In this document: piece after piece, positions 1-51,685 of the stretch
Layout: the number at the start of each line of letters is the position of its first letter
How positions within the stretch are numbered: position 1 is the stretch's first letter
Notes under the pieces: generated by a model
Seen by the model: the letters and a program-made list of their open reading frames with translations, nothing else
What the model was told of the DNA's origin: nothing
Databases searched by the model: none
Position numbers and translations under genes: made by a program
Origin: Diplonema japonicum
Lineage: Eukaryota > Protista > Euglenozoa: Diplonemea
DNA: 64,000 nt
Reading direction: 5' to 3'
NCBI GenBank assembly: GCA_964019335.1
Contig: OZ025753.1
Span: forward strand, 62,001 to 126,000

Positions 1-3000
1 ATCAATACCTTTCCGTCAACAACGAATAAAACAAACACTTATAAGAAGTATAGTCAGTCGCGCATATATAACTCCCACCCCTTCAACTACCGTGCAATCA
101 ACAGGTCGCCCTCCAGAGAGGAAGTCATCCGCACCATCTGTGACGCCTATGGTGCGGGTGTCCGAAAGGCCCTCTTCGTACGTGATGTCGTACAAAACGG
201 CAACGTGCTAAAGGTCCACCTGGAGATCGCCACCAGGGACACACATATTCCCTATGCACTCTTCACGCAGGCACTCCTACACCACCATGGAGTCCGTGCC
301 TGTTTCACCGAAGGTGTAGCACCGACGCGTCCCGTCAAGACCTTACGGAAAACGCCTACTACTCCTCAACCGGCCCACCGGCCGAACCACCGGTCTGGCC
401 CCCAGCCCGCTTATCGTCACGGATACCAACCTGCCTACGATAACCGCTGGGGCAAAGATCAAAACAGGTACGAGATCCGCAAGGACTTCTTCCTTAGCAC
501 AATGGCAAAGGACCAAGTCAAGAAGTCGCGGGACATCTCCAAGCCTAGCCCGGTCAGCTGCAAACGAAACAACGGCAGCATTGACTGGGCCCTCTGGGAG
601 TCTCTCAGCCAGGACGCAGCCGCCAAGTTCATGGCCAAGTACAGCCGCATCGTAAAGAACATGCGCCAAGGAAAGGCCCCCGAACAGGACGCAGCAGGTA
701 TCATCTACCTCGCTGTCGACAAACACGGTGAACCTGTGTACGCAGGGCAGACGTTTAACACCTTACGTCGTCGTATGCAGGGCCACTGGAGCAGCGCCAG
801 ATCGCACAGAGAGAACGCTGAAAGCAACGACACCCGCTTTCACAAGGCCCTCAGGGAAAACGGGGGCCCGTTATTCGCTTTCCCCGTCGAATCGATCAAC
901 CCCAAGTTCTTCGACGACGCCAAGTCCTTCCGTCGTGTTGCGATCCCCAGGGAGAACCAGTACATCAATAGGCTGGCTTGCTCCCTTAACATGCGTGGTA
1001 GGTTTGCTAAGACGCAGACCCGTCGCCGCCGCAACACGAAACGTAAACCTAAGACGGTACGCGAGCAGCAACAGCAGCGACACCAACACCAGGGGCGCTC
1101 GAATGCCAAACAGGACCCCAGCAGCAACACTACTACGTCCCCTTCGAACCCCAACAACACCCCCACCAGATCTACCGCTCCCTCGATACGGCTGAACGAC
1201 GACGGGGAGCTGTCGATCCAGGCTACTGGGTCCAACTACAAGTCCCTGTGTATGAAGATCACCGCGATGTGTGCACACCCCGATGTGCTGAACTACGACT
1301 TCACTACCTGGGCCCCCAAGACCGTCTTCAGGTACCTGAACTTCCTGAGGCGTTACTTCGTCGGGAACTTCTTCACCGCCAAGATCGCGGCTATCGAACG
1401 AGGCCTCACCAACCGCCTCAGCCCTGCCCTCTTGAAAAAGGTGGTCCGCCGAGACGAAGGCTTCGTGTGGTTCAAAACGAGTTTTGACCACAAGGCCAAG
1501 GAGATGATCCTCTGGCGTAAGGTCTTCGAGGACAAGGAGGTAATTGCGGCATGCCCCAAGCCAGCCCTCCTTCGCAGAGTACACATGTGCAACAAGCTTG
1601 GTCAAACCCTCAAGGCCACAGTGTGCAATGTGACGAAGCTCAGCATCGAGACCCCGCGTCCAGAAGCGGCCGAGCCTACAACAAACTGCCCTTGCTCGAA
1701 GCGCAAGACCTCACACACACATGAGGGACACGCCTGCGGACTAGCAGCAGAGGTCATCGATGACGACGAAGTGAAGGAGGTTCTGAACAGAGGCATGAAG
1801 TTCCGCCTCTCAACACACGCCCTCCTCTCTTCCCAAAGTCTCGAGGAGGACATCAACGGGTTCATCACTCAGAACTTTCGGAGATCCCCTGCAGTGAAAA
1901 AGGATTCCTTCCGGAAGGTCCTCCTCGCTAAGGCACAGAACCTTCTCCACCCCCACACTCAGTCTCCGGTCTTCGACCCCTCAGTCCCGGAGTTCATCAA
2001 GACAAAGCTCCGGAAACTTCAGGAGGTCTACGTTTTCCTCCCCATAGACAAAAGCACCCACGACATTGGCGTCTGTTGCAAGGATCACTACCTCAGGATC
2101 CTGCACCAACAGCTTGATAGCCAAGCTTTCGAGCCGGTCTCGAAGCCCTTGGACTCGATCTTCTCCGAAATAGCTGATCAAGCCAAGACCTTCAACCTCG
2201 ATTCCACACGTCGCTTGCCATACCTGTACGGTACCCTGAAGCTACACAAAGACAAAGTGGGCGTCAGGTGGATCTCTGGTGTCTCCTCCACTGATGCACC
2301 CCCTGTGGACCAACCAGCAGCGGTCAGCACGCAGGAAATTATGGAGAACTTGGTCGCAGCAGGCGGCGATACAACGGGCAATAAAGCTAAGAAACCCACA
2401 GCTGCCACCACGGCCCTCCATCTAGAACTGTCTTCCCTCCTGAAGGCTGTCCAACGCGCGCTGCTGGACAAGGATCTGGAGGGCAGGTCCAAGACCCACG
2501 GTCCCGACGGTATCCGACTAAAGCGGTACTGGATCGTCGACTCGGCCGAGAACGTAGCTGCGGATATCAAGCAGCAGTACACAACTTACAAAAGCCTGTC
2601 CCCTGCCACGTACGACTTCCGGGACATGTACACCAACCTCGACCAAGGGCGTCTGAAAGAGGGGGTTCGTAAAGCAGTCCAAGAAGCGTTCGACTTCACC
2701 GGCAAGAACCTCACACGTGGCAAGGACGGGAGCTCCTTCACAGATGCCGACGAGGACGATGTCTACACCCCGGAACGGATCCATAAGCTCCTGGACCTCG
2801 TCGTTGACAACACCTATGTTGTGCAGGGTGGCCGCGCCGTTCGTCAAGTAAAGGGTATCCCCATGGGTGGGAACGCCTCCCCCGACCTGGCGAACCTGTT
2901 CTGCTACGCCGTGGAGGCCGCATACATCGACAAGCTCCTCGCCGAAGAGGACTGGGAGACCTTGAAACGCTACTGCAACGCGTGTCGCTACATCGACGAC

Positions 3001-3891
3001 TTCCTGTTGTGGAGCACTGCGCCACCCCCGGAGGAGCTTTATGGCATGGCTTATGTAAAGACCTCTTCAGACCCATGCGACGTCCCCTTTATCGGGATTC
3101 GCATCCGGATAGAGCGCCACGAACAAGCTAAGCACAACTATATTAGACTTAGCATTAACGATAAGGCGCAGAACTGGCGCTTCCGGCCAACGCGGTTCAC
3201 CCACGGGCACACCGCGGCGCCCACCACCCAGGGACCAGGCATCTTCAAGGGCATGGTCATTCGTGCCTGCGCCCTGACCAACAACATCGCGGACCTCAAA
3301 CGGGAGATCGCTTCAGTGATCTACCTGCTCCTAGATCGCGGTCACGACAAGGGCGGCCTGCGGAAAGCGTACAACGCCTTCCTTATCGAACGCGTGGATC
3401 GACGCTTCGCCATGGAGAAAAGCAACCTGCTGGCCTTCTTCACGCAAGTCCTCCACCGATACGACGCCAGAGCCCCGGTAGATTCTTGGTTGCCGGAAAA
3501 AACGTACATAGGCCCCAAGAAACCCCGTGCGCTTCCCTCGGACGACTCCTCAGCTGACTCCTCAGTCGTCTCCTCAGTCGCCTTCTCGGGGGGGCCCCTC
3601 AGACGAGCCCTCGGACAATTCCTCGGACAACTCTTCAGGTCTTGTCGAACCGTCACAACCCCGAGCAGCCTCCGTGGTCTCACCATCTGGTGTCACGGAC
3701 CAGGTTTTTTCGCCCCCCATCAACCTGCACACCAACAGCGGGGAAGGTCGCCTGGGCCTGGAATGCGGCTGGGCCGTCATAAACTGGTTGGCGGACTATG
3801 CTGGTGTGGACCGCATCCCCTTCTCTACAATGCAGGAGATCCAGGAGATGTACCACGGCTTCTCACGACTCATCTCCCCTTCCAGCACTGA
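1..3891 (+). CDS. PLE ORF1 (5'-partial): N-terminal GIY-YIG endonuclease, CxC...H...H motif, PLE-type reverse transcriptase
   Basis: GIIYLA...VYAGQT...RRRMQGH...ENQYIN (~697-970); NCPC...HTHEGHAC; PIDKS; LPYLYGTLKLHK; YDFRDMYTNL; GIPMGGNASPDLANL; RYIDD. The frame is open from base 1 and matches the 1326-aa ORF at 44688. Confidence 0.92.
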   Translation: MNTFPSTTNKTNTYKKYSQSRIYNSHPFNYRAINRSPSREEVIRTICDAYGAGVRKALFVRDVVQNGNVLKVHLEIATRDTHIPYALFTQALLHHHGVRACFTEGVAPTRPVKTLRKTPTTPQPAHRPNHRSGPQPAYRHGYQPAYDNRWGKDQNRYEIRKDFFLSTMAKDQVKKSRDISKPSPVSCKRNNGSIDWALWESLSQDAAAKFMAKYSRIVKNMRQGKAPEQDAAGIIYLAVDKHGEPVYAGQTFNTLRRRMQGHWSSARSHRENAESNDTRFHKALRENGGPLFAFPVESINPKFFDDAKSFRRVAIPRENQYINRLACSLNMRGRFAKTQTRRRRNTKRKPKTVREQQQQRHQHQGRSNAKQDPSSNTTTSPSNPNNTPTRSTAPSIRLNDDGELSIQATGSNYKSLCMKITAMCAHPDVLNYDFTTWAPKTVFRYLNFLRRYFVGNFFTAKIAAIERGLTNRLSPALLKKVVRRDEGFVWFKTSFDHKAKEMILWRKVFEDKEVIAACPKPALLRRVHMCNKLGQTLKATVCNVTKLSIETPRPEAAEPTTNCPCSKRKTSHTHEGHACGLAAEVIDDDEVKEVLNRGMKFRLSTHALLSSQSLEEDINGFITQNFRRSPAVKKDSFRKVLLAKAQNLLHPHTQSPVFDPSVPEFIKTKLRKLQEVYVFLPIDKSTHDIGVCCKDHYLRILHQQLDSQAFEPVSKPLDSIFSEIADQAKTFNLDSTRRLPYLYGTLKLHKDKVGVRWISGVSSTDAPPVDQPAAVSTQEIMENLVAAGGDTTGNKAKKPTAATTALHLELSSLLKAVQRALLDKDLEGRSKTHGPDGIRLKRYWIVDSAENVAADIKQQYTTYKSLSPATYDFRDMYTNLDQGRLKEGVRKAVQEAFDFTGKNLTRGKDGSSFTDADEDDVYTPERIHKLLDLVVDNTYVVQGGRAVRQVKGIPMGGNASPDLANLFCYAVEAAYIDKLLAEEDWETLKRYCNACRYIDDFLLWSTAPPPEELYGMAYVKTSSDPCDVPFIGIRIRIERHEQAKHNYIRLSINDKAQNWRFRPTRFTHGHTAAPTTQGPGIFKGMVIRACALTNNIADLKREIASVIYLLLDRGHDKGGLRKAYNAFLIERVDRRFAMEKSNLLAFFTQVLHRYDARAPVDSWLPEKTYIGPKKPRALPSDDSSADSSVVSSVAFSGGPLRRALGQFLGQLFRSCRTVTTPSSLRGLTIWCHGPGFFAPHQPAHQQRGRSPGPGMRLGRHKLVGGLCWCGPHPLLYNAGDPGDVPRLLTTHLPFQH

Positions 3892-6358
3892 TGAAGCGCC
3901 CGATCCTCTTGGCAACTTTTCCCGCTCGACCTTGTCACGTGCTTGCCTTATGGTCGTTGGTGCAAACTTGGAGGTCTTCCGTGCGGGCATGAAAGAAAGC
4001 CCCTGCTTGATCGTTGGTCCCTTGAAACGAAGTCTCAGCGGCCACTGGTTCATCGCTCTCAGGAAGAAGGGAAGGTACATGGTCAAAGACACCGACGTAC
4101 GGCTAAGGCTCCAGAGCTTCAAACACATCTGCGCGACATACTCCGAACACAACATCCTCTGCATCCCAGACGATGTGTGGGCCAGGACAACCCCAGGCAG
4201 GAAACACAACACACGTGTTCTAGACCCTGAGGCTGAGTTTCGCCAGTTTGAGCCGGTCATCACCCCGGCGGCACCCCAGGTGAGCGACTCGAGCGCGCGA
4301 AAGACTGAGACCGCTCTCAACACCCCGGAAGATCGCACCCTCCTAACTCATGTCACCCTAGCTGCAGCTATAGCTACATATGCCGCACGCACCCGACGGC
4401 TCGACACAGGAGTCGCCGCATCAGGTGTGGATGCGCACACCGCTCACTTCGGGCGGCCCGTCGCCACCGCCATCATAGCCCTAGCTGCCGCCGTGGCCGC
4501 GCGAGCCGTGCACACCGGATGCTCTGTCACCACCACGTCTACGGCAAGCCAGACTAACGTGGTCGGAACTGTCCCGCTCTTCCTGAAGGTCTCGAGTCTG
4601 CACAAGTCTACACCACAGACAGCAGTCGCAACCTGTCAGACGGACCGTGTCACAGCACCTGTACTGTTCTCGATATCATCGACGCTCCAGACGGATCCTC
4701 CCAGCAGTAGACTGCCCCCGATGGACGCCGGACTGGGGTCGCCCTCGGCCGCGGCGGTCAGACTTACGAAGTCTGTCGAAATTCCGACGCCCCGCGCGAC
4801 CCTGTCGAGGCGGCCGGTTACTGAGCCTCGGTTGACACCATGCCTTCCACCGCCAACGGACGTGTCATCCACCCAGCTCGCGGCCTGCACTCAGTCCACC
4901 CGTCGGGACACCGGACACGGGAGTGACACACCGATGCCGTCGTCTACCATGGGACACGCGACACTCCAACCAGTGGTCGGCTCCCAGATTGTGACAACGT
5001 CGGCTGTGGAGTCATCGCTCGCCCGAGCCGTGACAACGCCCGTTCTGGCAGACGCCCCCCTCGGCGCCCGCCAGGTACAGCTCACTCCTTGCATCCAGTC
5101 CGTCCATGAGAACATCGGACTCGGGATGGATACGCCGATGGCTCCCGCCATGGGACACGCGACGCTTCAACCGGTGGTCAACGCCCAGAGAGACACGACG
5201 CTGACCCTGGAGCCGCCCGTGGCCCGAGCCGAGGCAGACGCTCCCCTAGACCCTCACCAGGCGGATGGTGGTTTAGAAATGATCGACCTCACGCAGGACT
5301 CCCCGGACAGACCCTCGCGCAAGAAGAAGCACGACGGCACTGCTTACGAGCACGAAAGCCGTCGTGGTAAGAGTTCCTCCACAGGCGATGGGGATCTTCT
5401 CATCCTGCGCGAGCAGTCACAGGGTTTTGATCAGGAAGCCCTCAACCGAAGGGCCCTCCAGAGACGGATGGATCGATACCTCAGTCTCTTGGTCTACTTC
5501 CGGCGACACCCGGAGCTCTTGGACGAACACCAGCGTCAGCTCCTGTCGGTCGGTCCCCTCCCGATGCACCTGGACACCTCTCCACATCAACTGCTGCTCG
5601 AGGCCCGTGACACGGATAGAACTGCCGACCAACAGGCAACCGTCGCCAACCAGGAACAGCTTCTTCTGATTGCGCACAAGGCGTTGCCTACCACCGAACG
5701 TCTTCGGTTGTCTCACGAATGGCACTCGGGGCTGAACACCGCGGTACAGCAACAGTGGTGGTCGGAGTTCTTCGCCCAAGGCGGCTGGAAACACCCACTC
5801 TTCGGTTCCGAGGCCCCAAGAGGTGACGAGACTAGGACTCCAGGGAGGACCCCTCTCCTGCTCACCTACAACGGGCAGAGGAACAAACGCCCGGAACCCG
5901 AAGACGGCCCCGCCCTTCCCGCGGCCAAACGGGATCTCGCCGCGACGAGGCCGAACACCAGAGTCACTGGACTTGTCGCCCTTAAGAGGCTCACCAGGGA
6001 AGCAGACGTCGACGGCCCTGAGGACCTGGATGAGCTTCGACACCTGGGCTTCCTTTCCCAGGGCGAGGCCGTCTTTGACCTCAGCTGCATGTCCAGGGCT
6101 TGCACACACTTCCTGGGTGCGACCCCCATGGTCACGGTCCCCCTCGACACACGCGTCGCGATCCCGTGTCTGCTGGTCTGTTATGACTCGACGTGGCTCT
6201 ACGCTTCCCGCCAGGGACAGGGCTTTCGGTTGCAGACCCAAGGGTTCAAGGACAAGTCGTATCCGACTGTGGCAGCCCTACTCGCTGACTTCGTGGGGGC
6301 AGGGACCCTCTACTACAGCGAGTCACAGTGGTCGACTGTGCTGAACTCCTACAACTAG
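3527..6358 (+). CDS. PLE ORF2 (+1 frame): Josephin-like cysteine protease, low-complexity linker, SIM/NLS, degenerate second Josephin-like domain
   Basis: 943-codon ORF, intact in both young copies and recognisable in the old copy. Motifs ECGWAVINWL, GNFSRSTLSRA, GHWFIALRKKGRYMVKDT. The first codon is GTG; expression is probably by fusion to ORF1. Confidence 0.75.
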   Translation: MRFPRTTPQLTPQSSPQSPSRGGPSDEPSDNSSDNSSGLVEPSQPRAASVVSPSGVTDQVFSPPINLHTNSGEGRLGLECGWAVINWLADYAGVDRIPFSTMQEIQEMYHGFSRLISPSSTDEAPDPLGNFSRSTLSRACLMVVGANLEVFRAGMKESPCLIVGPLKRSLSGHWFIALRKKGRYMVKDTDVRLRLQSFKHICATYSEHNILCIPDDVWARTTPGRKHNTRVLDPEAEFRQFEPVITPAAPQVSDSSARKTETALNTPEDRTLLTHVTLAAAIATYAARTRRLDTGVAASGVDAHTAHFGRPVATAIIALAAAVAARAVHTGCSVTTTSTASQTNVVGTVPLFLKVSSLHKSTPQTAVATCQTDRVTAPVLFSISSTLQTDPPSSRLPPMDAGLGSPSAAAVRLTKSVEIPTPRATLSRRPVTEPRLTPCLPPPTDVSSTQLAACTQSTRRDTGHGSDTPMPSSTMGHATLQPVVGSQIVTTSAVESSLARAVTTPVLADAPLGARQVQLTPCIQSVHENIGLGMDTPMAPAMGHATLQPVVNAQRDTTLTLEPPVARAEADAPLDPHQADGGLEMIDLTQDSPDRPSRKKKHDGTAYEHESRRGKSSSTGDGDLLILREQSQGFDQEALNRRALQRRMDRYLSLLVYFRRHPELLDEHQRQLLSVGPLPMHLDTSPHQLLLEARDTDRTADQQATVANQEQLLLIAHKALPTTERLRLSHEWHSGLNTAVQQQWWSEFFAQGGWKHPLFGSEAPRGDETRTPGRTPLLLTYNGQRNKRPEPEDGPALPAAKRDLAATRPNTRVTGLVALKRLTREADVDGPEDLDELRHLGFLSQGEAVFDLSCMSRACTHFLGATPMVTVPLDTRVAIPCLLVCYDSTWLYASRQGQGFRLQTQGFKDKSYPTVAALLADFVGAGTLYYSESQWSTVLNSYN

Positions 6359-6437
6359 GAACTACTGGAGACGACCCTACGCAATGTAGGAGTGCCGGCC
6401 CGGCGTGCTACGAGGGCGATAGGCTATGCAGGGTCTC

Positions 6438-6844
6438 ACAGACCTCGCACCCTATGATTTTAGTTTCCACCTTTTCCTTTTCCACTTCTTGTCTTTTAAC
6501 TTCCCTTCTGCTTTCCCAACATGGTTTCCGTCCCGGGTATGACGTTAAACTGCGTCCGCCGACGCATTTGGGTCAACATTCTCTGATGACCAAGCCGTCT
6601 TTTTCCGTTTCTTCTCCCCTTCTCTTTGTTATGTTATTTTCATTATTCTTTCTGGCGATAGACTGATACGGGCCATGGAAGCAACCTCTGCTTAATTCCT
6701 GGTACGTGGGAGGCTCCTCTTGAGGATGTCAGTCACCTTTTCCCTTTTTTACTCGACTCTCTGTTTTCGTATGCAGTATTTATTCTTTCCCACCCCTTTT
6801 TATCTATTTCTTCGCTTCTTCATCCTAACTTAAAACCATTTCAG
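6438..6844 (+). repeat. 3' pLTR of PLE copy A
   Basis: Matches the direct repeats at 43338-43735 and 51215-51612, with a small variant segment after CTGATGACCAA. Confidence 0.9.
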
Positions 6845-7164
6845 TCCCCTTCTTTCCCGTCTTCTCTCCGACCACTCCGTAGAAGGAGTTTCCGTTTCCA
6901 ATCCCGTACCCCTTCCCGCGGGCTGTCATCCCGTACCCCTTCAAAGCTTTGTGAACGTCCATCTTAGACTGACGCGGTAGCTTAGATTGTCAATGTGTTT
7001 GCTGTGATCTGATATGATCTGATATGATCTGATATGACTCGATTTTCTTCTCTTCTCTTCTCTTCTCCTTTACGTTGCTGATCTGTGTCGCGCTTCAACT
7101 TCCAATATTTGTATTTTCTTTTCAAACCGTTGCTGAGTGATACTTTATTGGCACGGTCGGACAC

Positions 7165-13238: not shown

Positions 13239-13943
13239 CTAGTGCAGCACAGTAATGGAAGAAAGATTGGTCAACGTATTCAAGTCGATGGTTTCTAGTT
13301 TTTCGCACCCAAACAAGAAGCCATCACCAATAGAAGAAAGATTGGTCATCGCATTCAAGTTGATGGTTTCTAGATTTTTGCACTTATATAAAAGATTTTC
13401 ATCAATGGTGGAAACATTGGGGAGGATGAGATCAACAGACGTCAGGTGGTCGCACTCTTCAAGAAACTCAGAGCCTATCCTTGTAACACAGCCTGTGGAG
13501 TCGGTGACAACGAGGAACCGAAGTTCAGAAGGAAGGACCGTCCTGTCCATGGACAAGACTTCGACAGCTGGCGAGTTCCCCACCTCCACCACCAGAACCA
13601 GCTCAGGGACAGCTCTCACAAGCTCCTCAAGCTCTGAAACCACTTCTGAGCTCTCAAGCTCCTCCAGCTGAACGGTTCTCATCTTCGCCTCCACATGGAC
13701 CACGCTGCCCTCCACGAGCCCGAGTTCCTGGATATCTTCACCCCCGTTCCTGTCCAGGACCTCTCCCTCCCAAACCAGTTCGAACTTGCCTTCGAGTAAA
13801 CCAGCAGCACACCCCGCCTTCTTGTACAGGATCCCCACCGTCTCCTTCCCCGACACTTCCACATCGTGAACCCCGCCTCCCGTCTTCACGAACACTGTCA
13901 TATCGTTCACCTCTTCACCTGATCCCTCTCTCTTTCCATTCAT
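13239..13943 (-). pseudogene. Ubiquitin-like domain + BspA-type LRR protein, probably 3'-truncated
   Basis: MTVFVKTGGGVHDVEVSGKETVG...FELVWEGEVL (UBL fold signature, likely ATG 13901), then about three 25-aa LRRs ending abruptly. Paralogue of 35463-36764. Confidence 0.75.
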
Positions 13944-14360
13944 AAAAAAGTTGTCTCGATTTTAGTGGTGCCATGCAGTATGTGACACAGCGGCCACCCT
14001 TGTGAAACTTCGCCCCGAAGCCTCCCAAGTCCCCTGTGGTCCCGTAGAAGGTAAAAGTGGAGAGGTAAAGAAAGCTTGGAAATTGAAATAGGGAGAGGGG
14101 CCACAGAAGCAATTAAACACCAACTGGAGAGTTGTGGGAGGCTTGCTTCACTGGCACGATGCCGCGGGGAGGCTACTTGCCTGACCTGGTGAAGCCACCT
14201 CGCGATGCTAACTGGCGCCACGCGTAGGGTGGGCTCTCCACCCCCTTCCAGGTTTCCCCACGTGTACGGCTTTAGAACGAGAGTTTCCCTTTCGCTTGTG
14301 TTTCTCCAAACCACAATTACCAGGAACCACCACAGGGAGGTTGGAAACATTGGTCCCCAA

Positions 14361-17300
14361 AAAAGGAAAAAGGTGACTGACATCCTCAAGAGGAGCCTCC
14401 CACGTACCAGGAATTAAGCAGAGGTTGCTTCCATGGCCCGTATCAGTCTACCGCCGGAAAGAATAATGAAAATAACGGAACGAAGCGAAAAAGGAAAAGA
14501 GAGAAGACGGCCTGGTCGCCAGGAAGTGCTGGTTCAGACGCGTCGGCGGACGCAGTTTAACGTCATACCCGGGACCGAAAACATGTAGGAAAAGGCAAAA
14601 GCAGAAAAGGTAATAACAAGCTTAAAATTGGAAAGATAATGGAATGGGTGGAAACTAAATAATAGGGTGCGAGATCTGTGAAACCTTGCATAGCCTATCG
14701 CCCTCGTAGCACGCCGGGCCGGCACTCCTACATTGTGTAGGGTTGTTTCCGATTGTTCCTAGTTGTAGGAATGCAGGACAGTCGACCACTGCGATTCGTT
14801 GTAATAGAGGGTCCCGGCCCCTACAAAGTCAGCGAGCAGGGCTGCCACGGTCAGTAGGACTTGTCCCCGAACCCTTGGGTTTGCAGCAGAAAGCCCTGTT
14901 CCTGGCGGGATGCGTAGTGCCACGTCGAGCCGTGATCAGCAGGCACGGGATCACAACCCGTGTGTCGAGGGGGACCGCGACCAGGGGGGCCTCACCCAAG
15001 AAGTGAGTGCACGCCCTGGACATGCAGTTGGGGTCAAAAATGGCCTCGCCCTTGGAAAGAAAGCCCAGATGTCGAAGCTCATCCAGGTCCTCAGGGCCGT
15101 CAACGCCTGCATCCTTGGTGAGCCTCCGGAGGGCGACGAGCCCAGTGATCCTGGTGTTCGGCCGCGTCGCGGCGAGATCTCGCTTGGCCGCGGGGAGTGC
15201 AGGACCGTCCTCAGGCTCCGGGCGTTTGTTCCTCTGTGCGTTGTAGGTGATCAGGAGAGGGGTCTTCCCCGAAGGTCTAGCTTTATCGCCTCCTGGGGTC
15301 TCGGAGCCAAAGAGCGGGTGCTTCCATCCGCCTTGGGCGAAGAACTCCGACCACCACTGTTGCTGCACCGGGGTGTTCAGTCCCGAATGCCACTCGTGAG
15401 ACAGCCGGAGACGCTCGGACTCAGGCAGTGCGTTGTGCGCAGTCAAAAGTAGTTGCTCTTGGTTGGCGACAGTTACTTGTTGGTCGGTAGTTCTGACCGC
15501 GTCACGAGCCTCGAGCAGCAGTTGATGTGGAGGGGTGTCCAGGTGCTTCGGGAGGGACCCGACCGCCAGGATCCGTCTCTGGTGCTCGTCCAAGAGCTCC
15601 ACGTAAGAAGAAGCACGACGGCACTGCATACGAGCACGAAAGCCGTCGTGGTAAGAGTTCTACATCCACCGACGACGAAGGGCTTCTCATCCTTCGCGAA
15701 CAGTCCCAGGGCCTTGACCAGGATGCCCTCGACCGAAGGCTCCCCAAAGACGGATGGCCGCTACCTCAGTCTCTTGGTCTACTTCCGACAACGACCGAGG
15801 GTTTATCCGGGGAGTCCTGTGTGAGGTCGATCACCTCTGGGGCCCCGTTTGTTCGAGGAGGGTCAAGGGGGGCAACTGCCTCGGTTCGGGCAACGGGCGC
15901 CTCCAGGGTCGGTGTTTGGACGCCGACCGCCGGTTGGAGTGTCGCGTGTCCCATGCCGGGAGGCATCGGCGTGTCAATCCCGAGCCCGATGTCCTGATGG
16001 GCGGACTGGGTGCATATCGTAAGCTGGGCGGCCCCAGGGACCGTCACTAGGGCTCCAATCGTCTGGTGGATGCCCAGGGGGCCCCCTGCCGACTCGGGCG
16101 TCGTCGCCTCGACTCGGACTAAGGATGGCTCCGCAGCCGACGTCGATTCGGTGCTGATAACCGGTTGGAGTGTCGCGTGTCGCATGCCAGACGGCATCGG
16201 TGTGTCAAACCCGTGCCCGGTGCAGACCGCGAGCTCAGTGGGTGCCACGCTCGTTGATGGCGGCTGGCACGGTGTCAACTGCGGCCCAGCATTCGTCCGT
16301 CTCAACAGAGTCGCGCGGGGTGTAGAGGCTGCTGAAATGGTTTTAAGTTAGGATGAAGAAGCGAAGAAATAGATAAAAAGGGGTGGGAAAGAATAAATAC
16401 TGCATACGAAAACAGAGAGTCGAGTAAAAAAGGGAAAAGGCTGCAAGCGATCGCGGTTCTGTAGCCTCCGAAACCGGCCTGGCCGAGGTCGCAGGCGTCC
16501 TCAGTTCTATAGACCTTGTGAATAGCCTGACCTCTGGTGAAACGGGTGTCTGCAGTTTTGCCGACTTCGTAAAAAGCTTGATCGGCGCGGCGTCCTCAAT
16601 TCCGCGTATATTGGACAGGTGTTGCGGTCGGGTCCGTCTGACAGGCTGCGACTGCTATCTGTGGCGCAGACTTCCGCAAACTTGCGACCTTCGGGAAAAG
16701 TGGGATCGTTCCAACTAAGTCTGTCTGGCTCGTCGCAGATGTGGTGGCGACAGAGCATCCGGTGTGCACGGCCCGGACGGCCACAGCGGCAACTAGGGCC
16801 ACGAAGGTTATGGCGACGGGACGCTCGATGTGAGCAGTGTGTGTAGTCATAGATGGAGCGGCGGCTGTCGTGTCAGACCGTCTGACGCGTGTGGCATGTG
16901 CAGCTACGGCTGCGGCCTTGGTGACGTAGATAAGGAGGGTGCGGTCATCCGGGGTGTTGACAGCACCCTCAGCCGTTTCTGGATTCGAGTAGCTTGCCTG
17001 CGGTGCCGCCGGGGTGACGACCGGCTCTAACTCGCGGCTCTGCCTCAGGGTCAAGAACACGAGTAATGTGTTTCCTGCCCGGGGCTGTCTCGGCCCACGT
17101 CTTGTCTGTGATGCAGAGGATGCTGTGCTCGCAGTAGGTCGTGCAAAGCTGTTGGACACGCTGGGTCCTTAACTTTTTGTCGGTGTCTTTAACGACGTAC
17201 CGTCCGTTTGTAAGGAGAGCGATAATCCAGTGGCCGCTGCGACTGCGCTTCAGGGGACCGATTATCAGACAAGGGGCTTTCATGCCCGCGCTGAAAGTTA

Positions 17301-17963
17301 CCAATTTTGCTCCGACTACCATGAGGCAGGCGCGTGACATGGTTGAGCGATCGGGCGCTTCTGCGTTGTCGGAAGGGTTGACGCTTCGTGCGAAGCCGTG
17401 GTACATCTTCTGGATCTCTTGCATTGTAGAGAAGGGGATGCGATCCACCCCGGCATACTCTGCCAACCAGTTTATGACGGCCCAACCGCATTCCAGGCCC
17501 CAACGACCCTCCCCACTTTTGTTGTGCAGGTTGATGGGGCCTTGTATTGTTGCAGGACCTTAGAGAAAAAGGCCCGCAAGTGATTTCTCTCCGAGGCAAA
17601 GCGCCGATCCACTCGTTCGATGAGGAAGGCGTTGTACGCTTTCCGCAGGCCATCCCCGTCGTGACCGCGGTCCAAGAGCAGGTAGATCACTGAGGCGATC
17701 TCGCGTCGGAGGTCCGCGATGTTGTTGGTCAGGGCGCAGGCACGGATGACCATGCCTTTGAAGATGCCTGGACCCTGAGTGGTGGGGGCCGCGGTGTGCC
17801 CGTGGGTGAAACGAGTAGGCTGGAAGTGCCAGTTCTGGGCCTTGTCGTTTATGCTGAGCCTAATGTAGTTGTACTTAGGCTGCTCGTGGCGCTCTATCCG
17901 GATGCGGATCCCGATGAAGGGGACGTCGCACGGGTCGGATGAGGTCTTTACGTATGCCATGCC
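14361..17963 (-). mobile_element. Diverged, 5'-truncated and disrupted copy of the same PLE family
   Basis: RT C-terminus (MAYVKTSSDPCDVPF...), ORF2 pieces (ECGWAVINW, GHWIIAL...KDTD, VIDLTQDSPD, GGWKHPLFGSE) and pLTR islands. Has deletions, frameshifts, an internal inversion and a nested insertion. Confidence 0.9.
16332..16438 (-). repeat. Terminal piece of the young pLTR inserted into the old PLE
   Basis: Reverse complement of the last ~107 bp of the pLTR; flanked by GGCTG at 16327-16331 and 16439-16443. Confidence 0.85.
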
Positions 17964-18120
17964 AACACAGTCATATCTGAACCGACTCTAAGAGCCGAAC
18001 TCCCCCTTCCCCCCCTCCCAGTTTATCTTCACAGGTCGCCACCAACACTGGCCTCTATCTCTTATATTCGTTACCCTATTCGGGAAACAAAGGTTGCTTC
18101 CCCAACGCGTTCCATTCTCG

Positions 18121-28637: not shown

Positions 28638-28638
28638 G

Positions 28639-28869
28639 GAAAGCTACGCGCGCACCACGAAGGCAGCTGTTTTAAACGAGGAGGTGCAGACATTTCTATC
28701 GGCAGATGAGAAAAACCTGGTTGTCAAGGCTTGTTCAGATGCCCTTGTGTGGTTGGACACATTGCAGGAAGCCTCGAAGGAGGAGTACTCTAGCCGCCTA
28801 CACACACTGGAAGGTGTGTGTAAACCGATCGTATGTAAGATGTCCCACCCGGTTGAAGAAATTAACTGA
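28639..28869 (+). pseudogene. HSP70 C-terminal (lid) subdomain fragment
   Basis: ESYARTTK...LSADEKNLVVKACSDALVWLDTLQEASKEEY...LEGVCKPIVCKM follows the HSP70 pattern ESYA...WLD.NQ.A.KEE...LE.VC.PI..KM. No EEVD and no upstream domains. Confidence 0.75.
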
Positions 28870-28889
28870 TTCTTTTTTTTTTTTTGCGC

Positions 28890-35319: not shown

Positions 35320-35462
35320 GCACGCCACCGCGGCGGGCCGTTGCTAACCACTTCGTTCCTATCATAGTGAATTTTTTTTTTAACGGTTATATATCTACCG
35401 TTCGTCCTTACATGGTTTGGTGGGTTGTTATTTGTCGAGTTACTTCAGTTTACAAGAAGAAG

Positions 35463-37722: not shown

Positions 37723-37822
37723 AAGCAACCTCTGCTTAATTCCTGGTACGTGGGAGGCTCCTCTTGAGGATGTCAGTCACCTTTTCCCTTTTTTATACGA
37801 CTCTTTGTTTTCGTATGCAGTA
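37723..37822 (+). repeat. pLTR internal fragment (most of island C)
   Basis: AAGCAACCTCTGC...GATGTCAGTCACCTTTTCCC...CGTATGCAGTA. Confidence 0.85.
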
Positions 37823-42511: not shown

Positions 42512-43337
42512 CTTTTCAAAAATCTATATTGGGATTCTGTCTTGGAAAAATAAATACCCCACGCCACAGCATTGCAAAACGAAGAAAAAGAAGGTGCTGT
42601 TCACTGGGGATGAAGCTCTGGTAGATTTCAAGAACACGAACGACGACGAAAACGACGCTGCTTCGCAGCTTTTTTTTTAATTATTCTTTCCCTTTTTGTC
42701 ACAAGAAATCTTTTTTTATTATTCTTTTTTATTTCACTCTTCAGAAATTACTTCACGCACTGGGGGGGCCCATTACTTCACGCTAAATCTCATTACTTCA
42801 CGGTGAAATAATGGCCTGTTTTCCGTGAAGTAATAGGGGGTTTCCGTTAAATAATATGCCTCGGTAGGCCAATTTTTGCCTCGGTTCGGTTCCCAGTGGG
42901 GCTACTTTTTCCTCTCAGTTTGCTATTTCCCCCCAGGTTCAGCTCAATTGGCCAACTTTTGCCTCGGCTCAGTTCCAAGTTGGACTACTTTTTCCTCCCA
43001 ATTTGCCCACTTTTGGCTAGGCCTTGTTCCCAGTTTCTGTGGGTAACTCTTCTGTGGGTAAGGGTAACTTAGTCAGCTTACCCAAGCACCCCAAAAGACT
43101 TCAAAATACCGAAGCAGCAGAAAAAAAAGGAGCCAGCGGCCGCGCTAGGTATGGGAAGGCCTGATTAGAGATGGTGACAGTGGCAATGCCAGCGACAGCG
43201 GCAGCTCTTAGTCAACAAAAGGAGGAAAAACAACTTGTATTGTAACCTTTGTAACCCCTCTCTTATTGTACCCCTTGTCACCCTGTTGTGCCCCTCGTGG
43301 TGAAGTAATTTCAGAGTGTCGTGAAATAAAACCACTT

Positions 43338-43735
43338 ACAGACCTCGCACCCTATGATTTTAGTTTCCACCTTTTCCTTTTCCACTTCTTGACTTTTAAC
43401 TTCCCTTCTGCTCTCCCGACATGGTTTCCGTCCCGGGTATGACGTTAAACTGCGTCCGCCGACGCATTTGGGTCAACATTCTCTGATGACCAACCGGGTT
43501 TCTTCTCCCCTTCTCTTTGTTATGTTATTTTCATTATTCTTTCTGGCGATAGACTGATACGGGCCATGGAAGCAACCTCTGCTTAATTCCTGGTACGTGG
43601 GAGGCTCCTCTTGAGGATGTCAGTCACCTTTTCCCTTTTTTACTCGACTCTCTGTTTTCGTATGCAGTATTTATTCTTTCCCACCCCTTTTTATCTATTT
43701 CTTCGCTTCTTCATCCTAACTTAAAACCATTTCAG
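43338..43735 (+). repeat. 5' pLTR of copy B
   Basis: 398-bp direct repeat of 51215-51612; no differences seen by eye. Confidence 0.92.
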
Positions 43736-44687
43736 TTGCCTCTAACTGCACTACCTTGTGGGCGCCGTTTAGACGCAACCAGAGGCTCTGCAGGTTTTTA
43801 ACTCTTAAGATTAGTTTTTAAGACTTCTCACAGCTTTGCTGTACCAACCCCAGCGACCAACAATGGGGACTTACTTCACCGTAGGTCACTCTGCAGGGTC
43901 GCATTTATGTAGACCCAAATACGAAACTGATCTCCTCCCGTTCGTCGTTGAAAGCCGAAGTTTTCGAGGGCTTTCTTCCGAAAAAAGCCCGTTTTTGATA
44001 AAATGCCTTTTGACCGCACAACTAGAGACTCCCCACCTCTACATCCTACATCCTGAGAAATCCGCTCAGCCCCTTGTACGTCAAAGAGGGGGTCCATGCG
44101 AGACACGGCGTTAGTTGGGCGATGATAGGTTTCGTAAACTGGCCCTGGGGAGCTCTCGACCGTGCAGTGATAGTCCTGACTGCACGGGTGAACATACAGG
44201 CAAGGCATGCACGTTTTTTTGATGAGGTGAGCCGCGCTATATGACTGAACGTATATTTGCACATATATATAGTGCCCTATATCCATTCTATGCACCCAAC
44301 TATTCTTTTTCCCCCCCGTTCTTACCTAGACAAGGAGAACCCTTCGTTAGCTTTGCTGCCCGCGCAGGCTACGTCCTTCGCACAGGACCAACCTGCACGC
44401 TCAGGAAAGTGGTGGAAAAAAAGCCCTCAGTAGGCAACTCGGCTCATGTTGAAATACTCCGGTCGGACCCCGTTACGGCAACGGGTGCAGTTCATACCCA
44501 CCATCAGCTCATTATGACATGTCTAGACCTCCTTGTCCTCGGTCCTCTAACCCGTCTAGTGCTTTGACCAACTTGTGACTGTCATTCTAAAAGCTGTCCT
44601 AAATAAAACTGCTGCTAGGAGTCAGGTAACCAATCCACCTTTGTAGAAACCCTCCGTTTTTCTAAAGCATCAAGCATTTTCATAGCG

Positions 44688-47600
44688 ATGAAGAGACCCG
44701 CCTACGGCCGCTTTCCAACTCGTTATGACACGCGCGCATCACAGGTGCGGCGTGCCGCAGGAAATGCACCCCTAAAGATCAATACCTTTCCGTCAACAAC
44801 GAATAAAACAAACACTTATAAGAAGTATAGTCAGTCGCGCATATATAACTCCCACCCCTTCAACTACCGTGCAATCAACAGGTCGCCCTCCAGAGAGGAA
44901 GTCATCCGCACCATCTGTGACGCCTATGGTGCGGGTGTCCGAAAGGCCCTCTTCGTACGTGATGTCGTACAAAACGGCAACGTGCTAAAGGTCCACCTGG
45001 AGATCGCCACCAGGGACACACATATTCCCTATGCACTCTTCACGCAGGCACTCCTACACCACCATGGAGTCCGTGCCTGTTTCACCGAAGGTGTAGCACC
45101 GACGCGTCCCGTCAAGACCTTACGGAAAACGCCTACTACTCCTCAACCGGCCCACCGGCCGAACCACCGGTCTGGCCCCCAGCCCGCTTATCGTCACGGA
45201 TACCAACCTGCCTACGATAACCGCTGGGGCAAAGATCAAAACAGGTACGAGATCCGCAAGGACTTCTTCCTTAGCACAATGGCAAAGGACCAAGTCAAGA
45301 AGTCGCGGGACATCTCCAAGCCTAGCCCGGTCAGCTGCAAACGAAACAACGGCAGCATTGACTGGGCCCTCTGGGAGTCTCTCAGCCAGGACGCAGCCGC
45401 CAAGTTCATGGCCAAGTACAGCCGCATCGTAAAGAACATGCGCCAAGGAAAGGCCCCCGAACAGGACGCAGCAGGTATCATCTACCTCGCTGTCGACAAA
45501 CACGGTGAACCTGTGTACGCAGGGCAGACGTTTAACACCTTACGTCGTCGTATGCAGGGCCACTGGAGCAGCGCCAGATCGCACAGAGAGAACGCTGAAA
45601 GCAACGACACCCGCTTTCACAAGGCCCTCAGGGAAAACGGGGGCCCGTTATTCGCTTTCCCCGTCGAATCGATCAACCCCAAGTTCTTCGACGACGCCAA
45701 GTCCTTCCGTCGTGTTGCGATCCCCAGGGAGAACCAGTACATCAATAGGCTGGCTTGCTCCCTTAACATGCGTGGTAGGTTTGCTAAGACGCAGACCCGT
45801 CGCCGCCGCAACACGAAACGTAAACCTAAGACGGTACGCGAGCAGCAACAGCAGCGACACCAACACCAGGGGCGCTCGAATGCCAAACAGGACCCCAGCA
45901 GCAACACTACTACGTCCCCTTCGAACCCCAACAACACCCCCACCAGATCTACCGCTCCCTCGATACGGCTGAACGACGACGGGGAGCTGTCGATCCAGGC
46001 TACTGGGTCCAACTACAAGTCCCTGTGTATGAAGATCACCGCGATGTGTGCACACCCCGATGTGCTGAACTACGACTTCACTACCTGGGCCCCCAAGACC
46101 GTCTTCAGGTACCTGAACTTCCTGAGGCGTTACTTCGTCGGGAACTTCTTCACCGCCAAGATCGCGGCTATCGAACGAGGCCTCACCAACCGCCTCAGCC
46201 CTGCCCTCTTGAAAAAGGTGGTCCGCCGAGACGAAGGCTTCGTGTGGTTCAAAACGAGTTTTGACCACAAGGCCAAGGAGATGATCCTCTGGCGTAAGGT
46301 CTTCGAGGACAAGGAGGTAATTGCGGCATGCCCCAAGCCAGCCCTCCTTCGCAGAGTACACATGTGCAACAAGCTTGGTCAAACCCTCAAGGCCACAGTG
46401 TGCAATGTGACGAAGCTCAGCATCGAGACCCCGCGTCCAGAAGCGGCCGAGCCTACAACAAACTGCCCTTGCTCGAAGCGCAAGACCTCACACACACATG
46501 AGGGACACGCCTGCGGACTAGCAGCAGAGGTCATCGATGACGACGAAGTGAAGGAGGTTCTGAACAGAGGCATGAAGTTCCGCCTCTCAACACACGCCCT
46601 CCTCTCTTCCCAAAGTCTCGAGGAGGACATCAACGGGTTCATCACTCAGAACTTTCGGAGATCCCCTGCAGTGAAAAAGGATTCCTTCCGGAAGGTCCTC
46701 CTCGCTAAGGCACAGAACCTTCTCCACCCCCACACTCAGTCTCCGGTCTTCGACCCCTCAGTCCCGGAGTTCATCAAGACAAAGCTCCGGAAACTTCAGG
46801 AGGTCTACGTTTTCCTCCCCATAGACAAAAGCACCCACGACATTGGCGTCTGTTGCAAGGATCACTACCTCAGGATCCTGCACCAACAGCTTGATAGCCA
46901 AGCTTTCGAGCCGGTCTCGAAGCCCTTGGACTCGATCTTCTCCGAAATAGCTGATCAAGCCAAGACCTTCAACCTCGATTCCACACGTCGCTTGCCATAC
47001 CTGTACGGTACCCTGAAGCTACACAAAGACAAAGTGGGCGTCAGGTGGATCTCTGGTGTCTCCTCCACTGATGCACCCCCTGTGGACCAACCAGCAGCGG
47101 TCAGCACGCAGGAAATTATGGAGAACTTGGTCGCAGCAGGCGGCGATACAACGGGCAATAAAGCTAAGAAACCCACAGCTGCCACCACGGCCCTCCATCT
47201 AGAACTGTCTTCCCTCCTGAAGGCTGTCCAACGCGCGCTGCTGGACAAGGATCTGGAGGGCAGGTCCAAGACCCACGGTCCCGACGGTATCCGACTAAAG
47301 CGGTACTGGATCGTCGACTCGGCCGAGAACGTAGCTGCGGATATCAAGCAGCAGTACACAACTTACAAAAGCCTGTCCCCTGCCACGTACGACTTCCGGG
47401 ACATGTACACCAACCTCGACCAAGGGCGTCTGAAAGAGGGGGTTCGTAAAGCAGTCCAAGAAGCGTTCGACTTCACCGGCAAGAACCTCACACGTGGCAA
47501 GGACGGGAGCTCCTTCACAGATGCCGACGAGGACGATGTCTACACCCCGGAACGGATCCATAAGCTCCTGGACCTCGTCGTTGACAACACCTATGTTGTG

Positions 47601-48668
47601 CAGGGTGGCCGCGCCGTTCGTCAAGTAAAGGGTATCCCCATGGGTGGGAACGCCTCCCCCGACCTGGCGAACCTGTTCTGCTACGCCGTGGAGGCCGCAT
47701 ACATCGACAAGCTCCTCGCCGAAGAGGACTGGGAGACCTTGAAACGCTACTGCAACGCGTGTCGCTACATCGACGACTTCCTGTTGTGGAGCACTGCGCC
47801 ACCCCCGGAGGAGCTTTATGGCATGGCTTATGTAAAGACCTCTTCAGACCCATGCGACGTCCCCTTTATCGGGATTCGCATCCGGATAGAGCGCCACGAA
47901 CAAGCTAAGCACAACTATATTAGACTTAGCATTAACGATAAGGCGCAGAACTGGCGCTTCCGGCCAACGCGGTTCACCCACGGGCACACCGCGGCGCCCA
48001 CCACCCAGGGACCAGGCATCTTCAAGGGCATGGTCATTCGTGCCTGCGCCCTGACCAACAACATCGCGGACCTCAAACGGGAGATCGCTTCAGTGATCTA
48101 CCTGCTCCTAGATCGCGGTCACGACAAGGGCGGCCTGCGGAAAGCGTACAACGCCTTCCTTATCGAACGCGTGGATCGACGCTTCGCCATGGAGAAAAGC
48201 AACCTGCTGGCCTTCTTCACGCAAGTCCTCCACCGATACGACGCCAGAGCCCCGGTAGATTCTTGGTTGCCGGAAAAAACGTACATAGGCCCCAAGAAAC
48301 CCCGTGCGCTTCCCTCGGACGACTCCTCAGCTGACTCCTCAGTCGTCTCCTCAGTCGCCTTCTCGGGGGGGCCCCTCAGACGAGCCCTCGGACAATTCCT
48401 CGGACAACTCTTCAGGTCTTGTCGAACCGTCACAACCCCGAGCAGCCTCCGTGGTCTCACCATCTGGTGTCACGGACCAGGTTTTTTCGCCCCCCATCAA
48501 CCTGCACACCAACAGCGGGGAAGGTCGCCTGGGCCTGGAATGCGGCTGGGCCGTCATAAACTGGTTGGCGGACTATGCTGGTGTGGACCGCATCCCCTTC
48601 TCTACAATGCAGGAGATCCAGGAGATGTACCACGGCTTCTCACGACTCATCTCCCCTTCCAGCACTGA
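44688..48668 (+). CDS. PLE ORF1, complete (1326 aa): GIY-YIG + RT
   Basis: ATG start; same motifs as copy A. The last ~95 codons overlap ORF2 and may not be the real C-terminus. Confidence 0.93.
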   Translation: MKRPAYGRFPTRYDTRASQVRRAAGNAPLKINTFPSTTNKTNTYKKYSQSRIYNSHPFNYRAINRSPSREEVIRTICDAYGAGVRKALFVRDVVQNGNVLKVHLEIATRDTHIPYALFTQALLHHHGVRACFTEGVAPTRPVKTLRKTPTTPQPAHRPNHRSGPQPAYRHGYQPAYDNRWGKDQNRYEIRKDFFLSTMAKDQVKKSRDISKPSPVSCKRNNGSIDWALWESLSQDAAAKFMAKYSRIVKNMRQGKAPEQDAAGIIYLAVDKHGEPVYAGQTFNTLRRRMQGHWSSARSHRENAESNDTRFHKALRENGGPLFAFPVESINPKFFDDAKSFRRVAIPRENQYINRLACSLNMRGRFAKTQTRRRRNTKRKPKTVREQQQQRHQHQGRSNAKQDPSSNTTTSPSNPNNTPTRSTAPSIRLNDDGELSIQATGSNYKSLCMKITAMCAHPDVLNYDFTTWAPKTVFRYLNFLRRYFVGNFFTAKIAAIERGLTNRLSPALLKKVVRRDEGFVWFKTSFDHKAKEMILWRKVFEDKEVIAACPKPALLRRVHMCNKLGQTLKATVCNVTKLSIETPRPEAAEPTTNCPCSKRKTSHTHEGHACGLAAEVIDDDEVKEVLNRGMKFRLSTHALLSSQSLEEDINGFITQNFRRSPAVKKDSFRKVLLAKAQNLLHPHTQSPVFDPSVPEFIKTKLRKLQEVYVFLPIDKSTHDIGVCCKDHYLRILHQQLDSQAFEPVSKPLDSIFSEIADQAKTFNLDSTRRLPYLYGTLKLHKDKVGVRWISGVSSTDAPPVDQPAAVSTQEIMENLVAAGGDTTGNKAKKPTAATTALHLELSSLLKAVQRALLDKDLEGRSKTHGPDGIRLKRYWIVDSAENVAADIKQQYTTYKSLSPATYDFRDMYTNLDQGRLKEGVRKAVQEAFDFTGKNLTRGKDGSSFTDADEDDVYTPERIHKLLDLVVDNTYVVQGGRAVRQVKGIPMGGNASPDLANLFCYAVEAAYIDKLLAEEDWETLKRYCNACRYIDDFLLWSTAPPPEELYGMAYVKTSSDPCDVPFIGIRIRIERHEQAKHNYIRLSINDKAQNWRFRPTRFTHGHTAAPTTQGPGIFKGMVIRACALTNNIADLKREIASVIYLLLDRGHDKGGLRKAYNAFLIERVDRRFAMEKSNLLAFFTQVLHRYDARAPVDSWLPEKTYIGPKKPRALPSDDSSADSSVVSSVAFSGGPLRRALGQFLGQLFRSCRTVTTPSSLRGLTIWCHGPGFFAPHQPAHQQRGRSPGPGMRLGRHKLVGGLCWCGPHPLLYNAGDPGDVPRLLTTHLPFQH

Positions 48669-51135: not shown

Positions 51136-51214
51136 GAACTACTGGAGACGACCCTACGCAATGTAGGAGTGCCGGCCCGGCGTGCTACGAGGGCGATAGG
51201 CTATGCAGGGTCTC

Positions 51215-51612
51215 ACAGACCTCGCACCCTATGATTTTAGTTTCCACCTTTTCCTTTTCCACTTCTTGACTTTTAACTTCCCTTCTGCTCTCCCGACATG
51301 GTTTCCGTCCCGGGTATGACGTTAAACTGCGTCCGCCGACGCATTTGGGTCAACATTCTCTGATGACCAACCGGGTTTCTTCTCCCCTTCTCTTTGTTAT
51401 GTTATTTTCATTATTCTTTCTGGCGATAGACTGATACGGGCCATGGAAGCAACCTCTGCTTAATTCCTGGTACGTGGGAGGCTCCTCTTGAGGATGTCAG
51501 TCACCTTTTCCCTTTTTTACTCGACTCTCTGTTTTCGTATGCAGTATTTATTCTTTCCCACCCCTTTTTATCTATTTCTTCGCTTCTTCATCCTAACTTA
51601 AAACCATTTCAG
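51215..51612 (+). repeat. 3' pLTR of copy B
   Basis: Direct repeat of 43338-43735. Confidence 0.92.
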
Positions 51613-51685
51613 TTACCTACCGCCAAGTAATGCTTTACCGACCTCGAGGTAACGGTAAAGTCATTACTTGTTGGCAGTAAATAGC

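Follow-up and report, generated by a model that had tools for sequence, protein, structure and literature searches.

A predicted Josephin-fold cysteine protease domain in the polyprotein of a Penelope-like retroelement from Diplonema japonicum

The stretch of DNA analyzed here, a window of 64,000 nucleotides (nt) from the diplonemid Diplonema japonicum (assembly GCA_964019335.1, contig OZ025753.1, positions 62,001 to 126,000 of the forward strand), contains three copies, A, B, and C, of Penelope-like elements (PLEs). Downstream of the reverse transcriptase (RT), the polyprotein of this retroelement carries a domain which, judging from a confident structure model, belongs to a distant family of Josephin-fold, papain-like cysteine proteases lying outside the Pfam Josephin family PF02099. 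The domain retains a Cys-His-Asp triad, is encoded in one open reading frame (ORF) with the RT, and recurs in transposable elements of other classes. The polyprotein ends in a second papain-like domain, likely a degenerate copy of the first. The closest folds are those of deubiquitinases, and we consider it probable that the protease acts as an isopeptidase on ubiquitin or ubiquitin-like conjugates of the host or of the element itself.

A conserved Cys-His-Asp domain

In copy A, the motifs ECGWAVINWL, DPLGNFSRSTLSRACLMVVG, and GHWFIALRKKGRYMVKDT start at positions 3761, 3902, and 4040, respectively, and the triad is encoded by the codons TGC at 3764, CAC at 4043, and GAC at 4088, with the His and the Asp spaced 15 residues apart; the three codons are identical in copy B. 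Copy C, which has diverged and lies on the minus strand, has ECGW at 17493 and GHWIIALLTNGRYVVKDT (GHWIIAL) at 17235. Direct inspection of the sequence thus bears out what the original prediction had claimed from the letters alone, namely the motifs and triad positions in copies A and B and the persistence of the triad in copy C.

The domain is carried by three families of the element in the same genome (100, 75, and 42% identity). The 14-sequence alignment of the domain family (hereinafter A2) yields the pattern P-x-x-L-H-x-x-S-G-(E/Q)-G-x-x-x-x-E-C-G-W-A-x-x-N-W, followed by (D/E)-G-W-F-S and then by G-H-W-x-V-A-L ... V-K-D-T-D. Nearly every homologue covering these sites retains the Cys, the His, and an Asp 15 (or 16) residues further on; among them are homologues of 25-42% identity found in different genera and transposon classes. 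The triad singled out in the original prediction thus holds across most of the family. The exceptions look decayed, with Ser and Gln in P0011 and P0028, and Trp and Gln in P0013, P0022, P0023, and P0024.

The protease domain is under purifying selection. Between the 100% and 75% families, the ratio of nonsynonymous to synonymous substitution rates (dN/dS) is 0.31 for the protease domain, 0.16 for the RT, and 0.53 for the linker that follows the domain, and between the 100% and 42% families it is 0.23 for the protease domain. Collectively, the recurrence of the motif set in three families and 20 homologues and the dN/dS values of 0.31 and 0.23 indicate that it is more than a chance resemblance. 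The element is also transcribed, given that P0025, a protein from the D. japonicum transcriptome, is 100% identical to its C-terminal region across 67% of the query; the transcriptome also includes P0005, the counterpart of another copy in the genome.

The predicted fold is closest to Josephins

At the sequence level, the relationship is faint. Pfam assigns no protease family to ORF1, ORF2, or the polyprotein, and neither ORF2 nor the polyprotein matches Josephin at E<=1 (membership of PF02099, MEROPS C86, is set by a gathering score of 26 bits). The comparison with the Pfam Josephin hidden Markov model, which the original prediction had proposed as a test, thus produced no match for ORF2, the polyprotein, or the domain sequences. 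Searched against the sequences of the Protein Data Bank (PDB), a profile of four domain sequences yielded only a chance match, to arginine kinase. The 14-sequence profile yielded exactly four matches at E<=10, all of them Josephin domains (E 0.26-0.67), with GWFS aligned to GFFS of ataxin-3 and HW to the catalytic HW of ataxin-3.

The AlphaFold model built from the 14-sequence alignment is confident (predicted local distance difference test score, pLDDT, 89; predicted template modeling score, pTM, 0.85). In this model, Cys28 opens a helix (residues 28-40), and His121 and Asp136 are placed on the adjacent strands of a hairpin (123-128 and 131-135); with the Cys on the first helix and the His and Asp on the hairpin, the modeled arrangement is papain-like. 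When compared with the PDB using Foldseek, the model matched best the ataxin-3-like Josephin-ubiquitin complex 3o65 (E 1.4e-4, template modeling score, TM, 0.55-0.59), followed by peptidase C39 domains (TM 0.41-0.47; E 2e-4). An independent comparison with all 48,161 representative chains using VIA-align again ranked 3o65_A first (Z 12.1, root-mean-square deviation 3.0, 142 residues aligned) and human Josephin-2 (JOSD2, 6pgv_A) second (Z 10.8), ahead of three bacterial Josephin-like enzymes (Z 8.4-8.6) and C39 domains (Z 8.0-8.4). The remainder scored below Z 8, and the other listed matches were mostly papain-like or other cysteine proteases. For Peptidase C39 (PF03412) there was no Pfam match, and the C39 structures score under the 10.8-12.1 of the Josephins. 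The library of viral structures gave no match at E<=0.001, the top TM-score being that of an Orpheovirus Josephin-domain protein, and the neighbours in the ESM Atlas, which are weak evidence, comprised one C39 cluster, the rest being unnamed clusters of phage or bacterial origin. The structural check suggested in the original prediction, a search for a papain-like fold with AlphaFold and Foldseek, therefore came out in favour of the domain, with a confident model and Josephins as the best matches in both comparisons. The structural matches and the weak sequence signal converge on a distant Josephin-fold family that lies outside PF02099.

One polyprotein rather than two open reading frames

In copy A, the protease seems to be encoded by a separate frame, ORF2, which shares 365 nt with the RT frame and has no Met ahead of the catalytic Cys. 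This appearance is due to one extra G in the run at 3588-3594 (48365-48371 in copy B). The run comprises six G in 10 of the 12 near-identical copies covering the site, as well as on contigs from independent sequencing runs of the same organism, and seven G only in the two window copies. Copies A and B differ from eight sister copies in other parts of the genome by an in-frame deletion of 12 nt after 3535 and by the extra G at 3588. In the six-G form, RT and protease lie in a single open frame, which reaches 2175 amino acids (aa), as exemplified by the copy L039, where the frame starts at Met24 and GIY, YIDD, ECGW, and GHW are found at residues 286, 1050, 1311, and 1404. The two domains are likewise in one frame in the 42%-identity family of the same genome, in P0014 from the transcriptome of Flectonema neradi, and in P0008 from a contig of the European Nucleotide Archive (ENA). 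Read from the sequence, the protease is thus part of one polyprotein. Of the GIY-YIG-RT-protease retroelement originally envisaged, the PLE with a Josephin-like Cys-His-Asp domain stands, but the protease as a separate ORF does not.

The sequences directly past the 3' ends of copies A and B differ, which leaves two options, two insertions of the frameshifted form or an error in homopolymer assembly as the source of the extra G; segmental duplication as the origin of the two copies is rejected on the same ground. Programmed ribosomal frameshifting at the G run is rejected as well, because 10 of the 12 copies and the contigs of the other runs are simply in frame. We note that the extra G and the 12-nt deletion are common to both copies, which could reflect a frameshifted element mobilized in trans or the same homopolymer error at both sites.

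A likely degenerate second papain-like domain

The last ~170 residues of the polyprotein are conserved between PLE families and align with the protease family in hhalign (88.6% probability, E 2.7e-6, 91 columns). In this domain, Thr-Trp replaces His-Trp and, by reading of the alignment, Thr or Ser replaces the Cys. The AlphaFold model, derived from four sequences, is poor (pLDDT 54), with JOSD2 (Z 8.1) and C39 domains as best matches. The C-terminal domain is likely a degenerate second copy of the protease, that is, a putative pseudo-protease.

The element is a Penelope-like retroelement with an N-terminal endonuclease

By its sequence features, the element is a PLE with an N-terminal GIY-YIG endonuclease (EN), in the permuted GIY-YIG-before-RT arrangement named Naiad/Chlamys (Craig et al. 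2021, PMC8557442). The intact polyprotein comprises 2152 aa and starts at the same Met as the long upstream frame of copy B (Table 1). It matches PF01541 at residues 263-303 (E 9.5e-4, 19.9-21.0 bits) and, in the same ORF, PF00078 at residues 955-1037; both the GIY-YIG and the RVT_1 matches are below the Pfam cut-offs of 22.6 and 29.6 bits, respectively. The GIY-YIG match being upstream and the RVT_1 match further on, the endonuclease is N-terminal to the RT. Direct reading of the open frame identifies the motifs GIIY...YAGQT and YIDD, a CxC motif between EN and RT (NCPCSK, ~615-620), and the DK motif of the RT (LHKDKVG, ~801-807). The order of domains is GIY-YIG, CxC, RT, a linker rich in Ser and Asp, the predicted Josephin-fold protease (Cys1289, His1382, and Asp1397, numbered from the polyprotein Met), a low-complexity region of ~400 aa, and the dead papain-like domain. 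No match to the hammerhead ribozyme or to any other Rfam family was obtained at E<=0.1 across 42500-52500. A word-based protein search with the EN and RT part gave no relatives among 8000 candidates, probably because it was swamped by low-complexity words, and the RT had no match among PDB sequences.

The region between the two papain-like domains (residues ~1470-1850 of the L039 frame, window ~4240-5400) has a high content of Ala, Thr, Ser, and Pro, carries an internal repeat (...DTPMPSSTMGHATLQPVV... / ...DTPMAPAMGHATLQPVV...), and shows the fastest evolution (dN/dS 0.53). The genome holds many partial copies of the PLE. In the window, its 3' end or pseudo-long terminal repeat (pLTR) is also found as short solo fragments (6435-6851, 43335-43742, 51212-51619, 55733-56119, 16323-16440, and 37723-37839), which may represent insertions with strong 5' truncation or a non-autonomous derivative.

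Table 1. Features of the three PLE copies in the window
Feature	Positions	Strand	Remarks
PLE copy A	1..6845	+	5' end lost at window edge; 99.7% identical to copy B 44778-51613
GIY-YIG core, copy A	697..819	+	residues 165-205 of frame 205-3891; PF01541 E 4.1e-4, 21.0 bits
RT core, copy A (YIDD region)	2773..3021	+	PF00078 E 8e-5, 22.9 bits
ORF2 of copy A	3527..6358	+	frameshifted C-terminal half of polyprotein
Seven-G run, copy A	3588..3594	+	one G more than in 10 of 12 copies; creates apparent ORF1/ORF2 split
Predicted Josephin-fold protease domain, copy A	3683..4225	+	Cys 3764-3766, GNFS motif ~3911-3922, His 4043-4045, Asp 4088-4090
C-terminal papain-like domain, copy A	5813..6355	+	catalytic residues replaced
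Copy C, 75%-identity family	14359..17964	-	degraded; several frame changes and one stop
Protease domain, copy C	~17032-17544	-	Cys, His, Asp all kept
pLTR of copy B	43335..43741	+	407 nt; partial tandem copy of element 3' end; 99.5% identical to 51212-51618
PLE copy B	43742..51618	+	full length, 7877 nt; same extra G as copy A
Upstream frame, copy B	44688..48668	+	N-terminal region, GIY-YIG (~45474-45596), and RT (~47550-47798)
Predicted Josephin-fold protease domain, copy B	48460..49002	+	Cys 48541, His 48820, Asp 48865
Putative C-terminal pseudo-protease domain, copy B	50590..51132	+	

The module is found in other transposon classes of diplonemids

Searched exhaustively with HMMER, 1.84 billion cluster representatives contained only 20 matching proteins at E<=0.001 (best 9e-20), and all named homologues are from diplonemids, namely Lacrimia lanifica, F. 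neradi, Diplonema papillatum, and D. japonicum. Besides PLEs, the module is present at the extreme N-terminus of a long interspersed element (LINE) with APE endonuclease and RT (P0010, Flectonema), at the C-terminus of a transposase of the Mutator-like element (MULE)/Mutator type (P0009), and, in inactivated form, near the C-terminus of a D. papillatum retroelement with an N-terminal OTU domain and an RT (P0022, KAJ9442243.1, 2209 aa). In the genome from which the window derives, the module is confined to the three PLE families. For D. papillatum, the published genome description names LINE, SLACS, MULE, and Helitron proteins, but neither a PLE nor a Josephin-like domain (PMC10161547).

Several of these carriers have features of their own. 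P0022 is annotated as SLACS and combines two different ubiquitin-protease folds in one element, an OTU domain (Pfam E 3.6e-5) and the Josephin-fold module, in which Trp stands for Cys and Gln for His. P0015, from an ENA contig (624 aa), has three tandem copies of the module, partial or complete (residues 11-66, 288-429, and 502-555), the complete one with Gly where Cys is expected. Copies of LINEs with APE and RT are also found in the window at 20521-23643, 26634-31716, and 56787-60502, the first with Pfam Exo_endo_phos and RVT_1; they look related to P0010, yet are without the N-terminal Josephin-fold module in this genome.

Host genes of the window at 35367-36764 on the plus strand and 13239-13943 on the minus strand encode BspA-type leucine-rich repeats (PF13306, E 5.5e-32); their N-termini (MSITVFVKTEAGV... 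and MTVFVKTGGGV...) appear ubiquitin-like by eye only.

Possible function of the domain

We favour, as the probable role of the domain, that of a ubiquitin or ubiquitin-like isopeptidase. Its targets would be host conjugates or conjugates on the element's own protein, and the outcome would be that the transposition machinery is shielded from ubiquitin-dependent degradation or silencing, with the dead C-terminal copy as a possible binding partner. Consistent with this proposal, the folds closest to the model are those of deubiquitinases. In addition, the position of the module is free, being N-terminal, internal, or C-terminal in the carrier protein, and an accessory domain not tied to one position, which occurs also in a DNA transposon with a single protein, is easier to reconcile with an enzyme directed at the host than with one that processes a polyprotein. 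The Ulp1-like proteases of LINEs (PMC4640811) and the Josephin-related domains of Dualen and Chlamys-1_cBra (PMC8557442) provide precedents for a role in trans.

Several observations weigh against this interpretation or against the Josephin assignment on which it builds. Pfam finds no family at E<=10 for four domain sequences, and a search of the six-frame translated genome with PF02099 returned 0 candidates, a result of little weight, because control genomes were equally silent. The Josephin matches of the 14-sequence profile, with their E values of 0.26-0.67, are below significance, and C39 bacteriocin-processing peptidases are among the structural neighbours. The Gln that precedes the Cys of ataxin-3 by five residues (Gln9), which we take to be its oxyanion-hole residue, is absent, with an Arg in its place and a Glu or Gln conserved at -7 within G(E/Q)G; the latter may substitute for it through a loop longer by two residues. 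Finally, copies A and B, although separately inserted and lacking an in-frame protease, were nevertheless copied, which implies that the protease is dispensable in cis or supplied in trans.

The same catalytic residues might instead serve a cis-acting processing protease which cuts the 2152-aa polyprotein, for example, freeing EN-RT from the C-terminal region, as do papain-like proteases of RNA viruses. Such a role would suit a domain that, in one ORF, follows the RT and precedes a long C-terminal extension, with viral leader and PLpro proteases among its structural neighbours (Z 6-7) and, in family 1, an FSGG just upstream, in the linker. We nevertheless regard it as unlikely, given that neither this Gly-Gly nor any other candidate cleavage site is conserved upstream of the domain, that the Flectonema PLE P0014 has the domain after the RT and a short linker without GG, that a LINE has the module at its extreme N-terminus and a MULE transposase has it at the C-terminus, neither with an evident need for processing, and that the nearest folds are deubiquitinases.

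It is more improbable still that the domain is a papain-like peptidase without specific kinship to Josephins, be it C39-like or an independent offshoot, which acts on a non-ubiquitin substrate and resembles Josephins only through a shared minimal papain core. The failure of the Pfam Josephin model would be expected in that case, and the proximity of C39 domains (Z 8.0-8.4, Foldseek E 2e-4), also seen in the C39 cluster among the ESM Atlas neighbours, would be accounted for. Against it, Josephins exceed C39 by ~3.5 Z in longer alignments, only Josephins are retrieved from PDB sequences by the profile, with GWFS/GFFS and HW aligned, and the His-Asp spacing of 15 equals that between His119 and Asn134 of ataxin-3 (numbering of the aligned PDB chains). 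We give least credence to the domain being a noncatalytic relic or a pure binding module that has kept its triad through the youth of the copies. Dead versions are known (P0011/P0028 with Ser/Gln, P0013/P0022 with Trp/Gln), the element's own C-terminal domain is a likely dead copy, and the frameshifted copies A and B are still propagated; yet the triad is held at 25-42% identity across genera and transposon classes, and dN/dS is only 0.23-0.31.

Extending the isopeptidase proposal beyond the PLE, one can envision, tentatively and with considerable doubt, that four unrelated transposon classes of diplonemids (Penelope-like, APE-LINE, OTU-bearing retroelement, and MULE) share a portable Josephin-fold deubiquitinase module, paired in the PLE with a pseudo-enzyme, that strips ubiquitin or ubiquitin-like marks from the transposition machinery or from chromatin. 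If so, the module would represent a transposon counterdefense against ubiquitin-dependent restriction.

Comparison with known systems

The closest known counterpart is Chlamys-1_cBra of Chara braunii, a PLE with an N-terminal GIY-YIG and an ORF of ~1800 aa, the C-terminal extension of which was described as showing 'weak homology to Josephin' and containing a second motif (Craig et al. 2021, PMC8557442). The statement of the original prediction that no PLE with a Josephin-related domain was known is thus overtaken by this element. Going by its published description, the Chara element and the diplonemid one share the permuted order of GIY-YIG and RT, one long ORF (2152 aa in the diplonemid element), and a C-terminal extension in which a second conserved motif comes after a Josephin-like one. 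Members of the Chlamys clade have pLTRs in common, and most of them lack the canonical hammerhead ribozyme (PMC8557442); the diplonemid element likewise has a pLTR and gave no hammerhead match. The differences lie in the host, a streptophyte versus a diplonemid (Discoba), in the Josephin relationship, 'weak homology' there and a confident structure model here, and in the second motif, which is Cys/His-rich in Chlamys-1_cBra but likely a dead papain-like copy in the diplonemid PLE. No Chara protein is among the 20 relatives from the 1.84 billion representatives.

Dualen/RandI non-LTR (long terminal repeat) retrotransposons carry a Josephin-related cysteine protease (JCP), proposed to interfere with the degradation of proteins (Kojima and Fujiwara 2005, as summarized in PMC8557442 and PMC9977147). 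As described there, the JCP resembles the diplonemid domain in being an accessory Josephin-like cysteine protease borne by a retrotransposon, but it belongs to a LINE class with both APE and restriction-like endonuclease (RLE), and its position is different. The Ulp1-like (C48) and OTU proteases of NeSL/Utopia LINEs (PMC4640811; OTU also in P0022) are likewise accessory proteases of ubiquitin or ubiquitin-like proteins, borne by transposon classes that are not related, but of other clans and folds.

Among cellular enzymes, ataxin-3, ATXN3L (3o65), and JOSD2 (6pgv) resemble the modeled domain in that helix 1 bears the Cys and a strand bears His-Trp, with Asn or Asp following 15 residues after the His, and the G(F/W)FS motif ahead of helix 3 is common to eukaryotic Josephins and the transposon domain. 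In contrast to eukaryotic Josephins, the latter has only ~15% identity to them, no Pfam match, and a location within a transposon polyprotein, and it differs from ataxin-3 in that the Gln at -5 is replaced by the G(E/Q)G loop at -7 and the third triad residue is Asp, not Asn. We know of no accessory protease of this kind in transposons, be it Ulp1, OTU, or the Josephin-related protease of Dualen, with an established function. The bacterial Josephin-like deubiquitinases and ubiquitin C-terminal clippases BpJOS (9f5t), PaJOS (9g7g), and PcJOS (9fn4), which scored Z 8.4-8.6, represent a divergent Josephin fold that pathogens or genetic parasites direct at the host ubiquitin system; unlike the transposon domain, they are secreted effectors, and some cut within ubiquitin rather than at the isopeptide bond (bioRxiv 10.1101/2024.07.24.604956).

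Given that the general idea is already published, the present finding is incremental. What appears to be new is the diplonemid host lineage, the structural support, the pairing of a putatively active with a likely dead domain, and the sharing of the family across four transposon classes. Euglenozoa are not among the lineages listed for permuted PLEs by Craig et al. 2021 (PMC8557442), so that PLEs with N-terminal GIY-YIG are hereby added for this group, and with the model a Josephin fold in a PLE would for the first time have confident structural support. The evidence points to the exchange of one small sequence family (20 of 1.84 billion representatives) between four classes of diplonemid transposons. 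Finally, a family that was active recently, has one intact copy, and is matched by the transcriptome offers a defined construct for probing the role of accessory domains of this kind.

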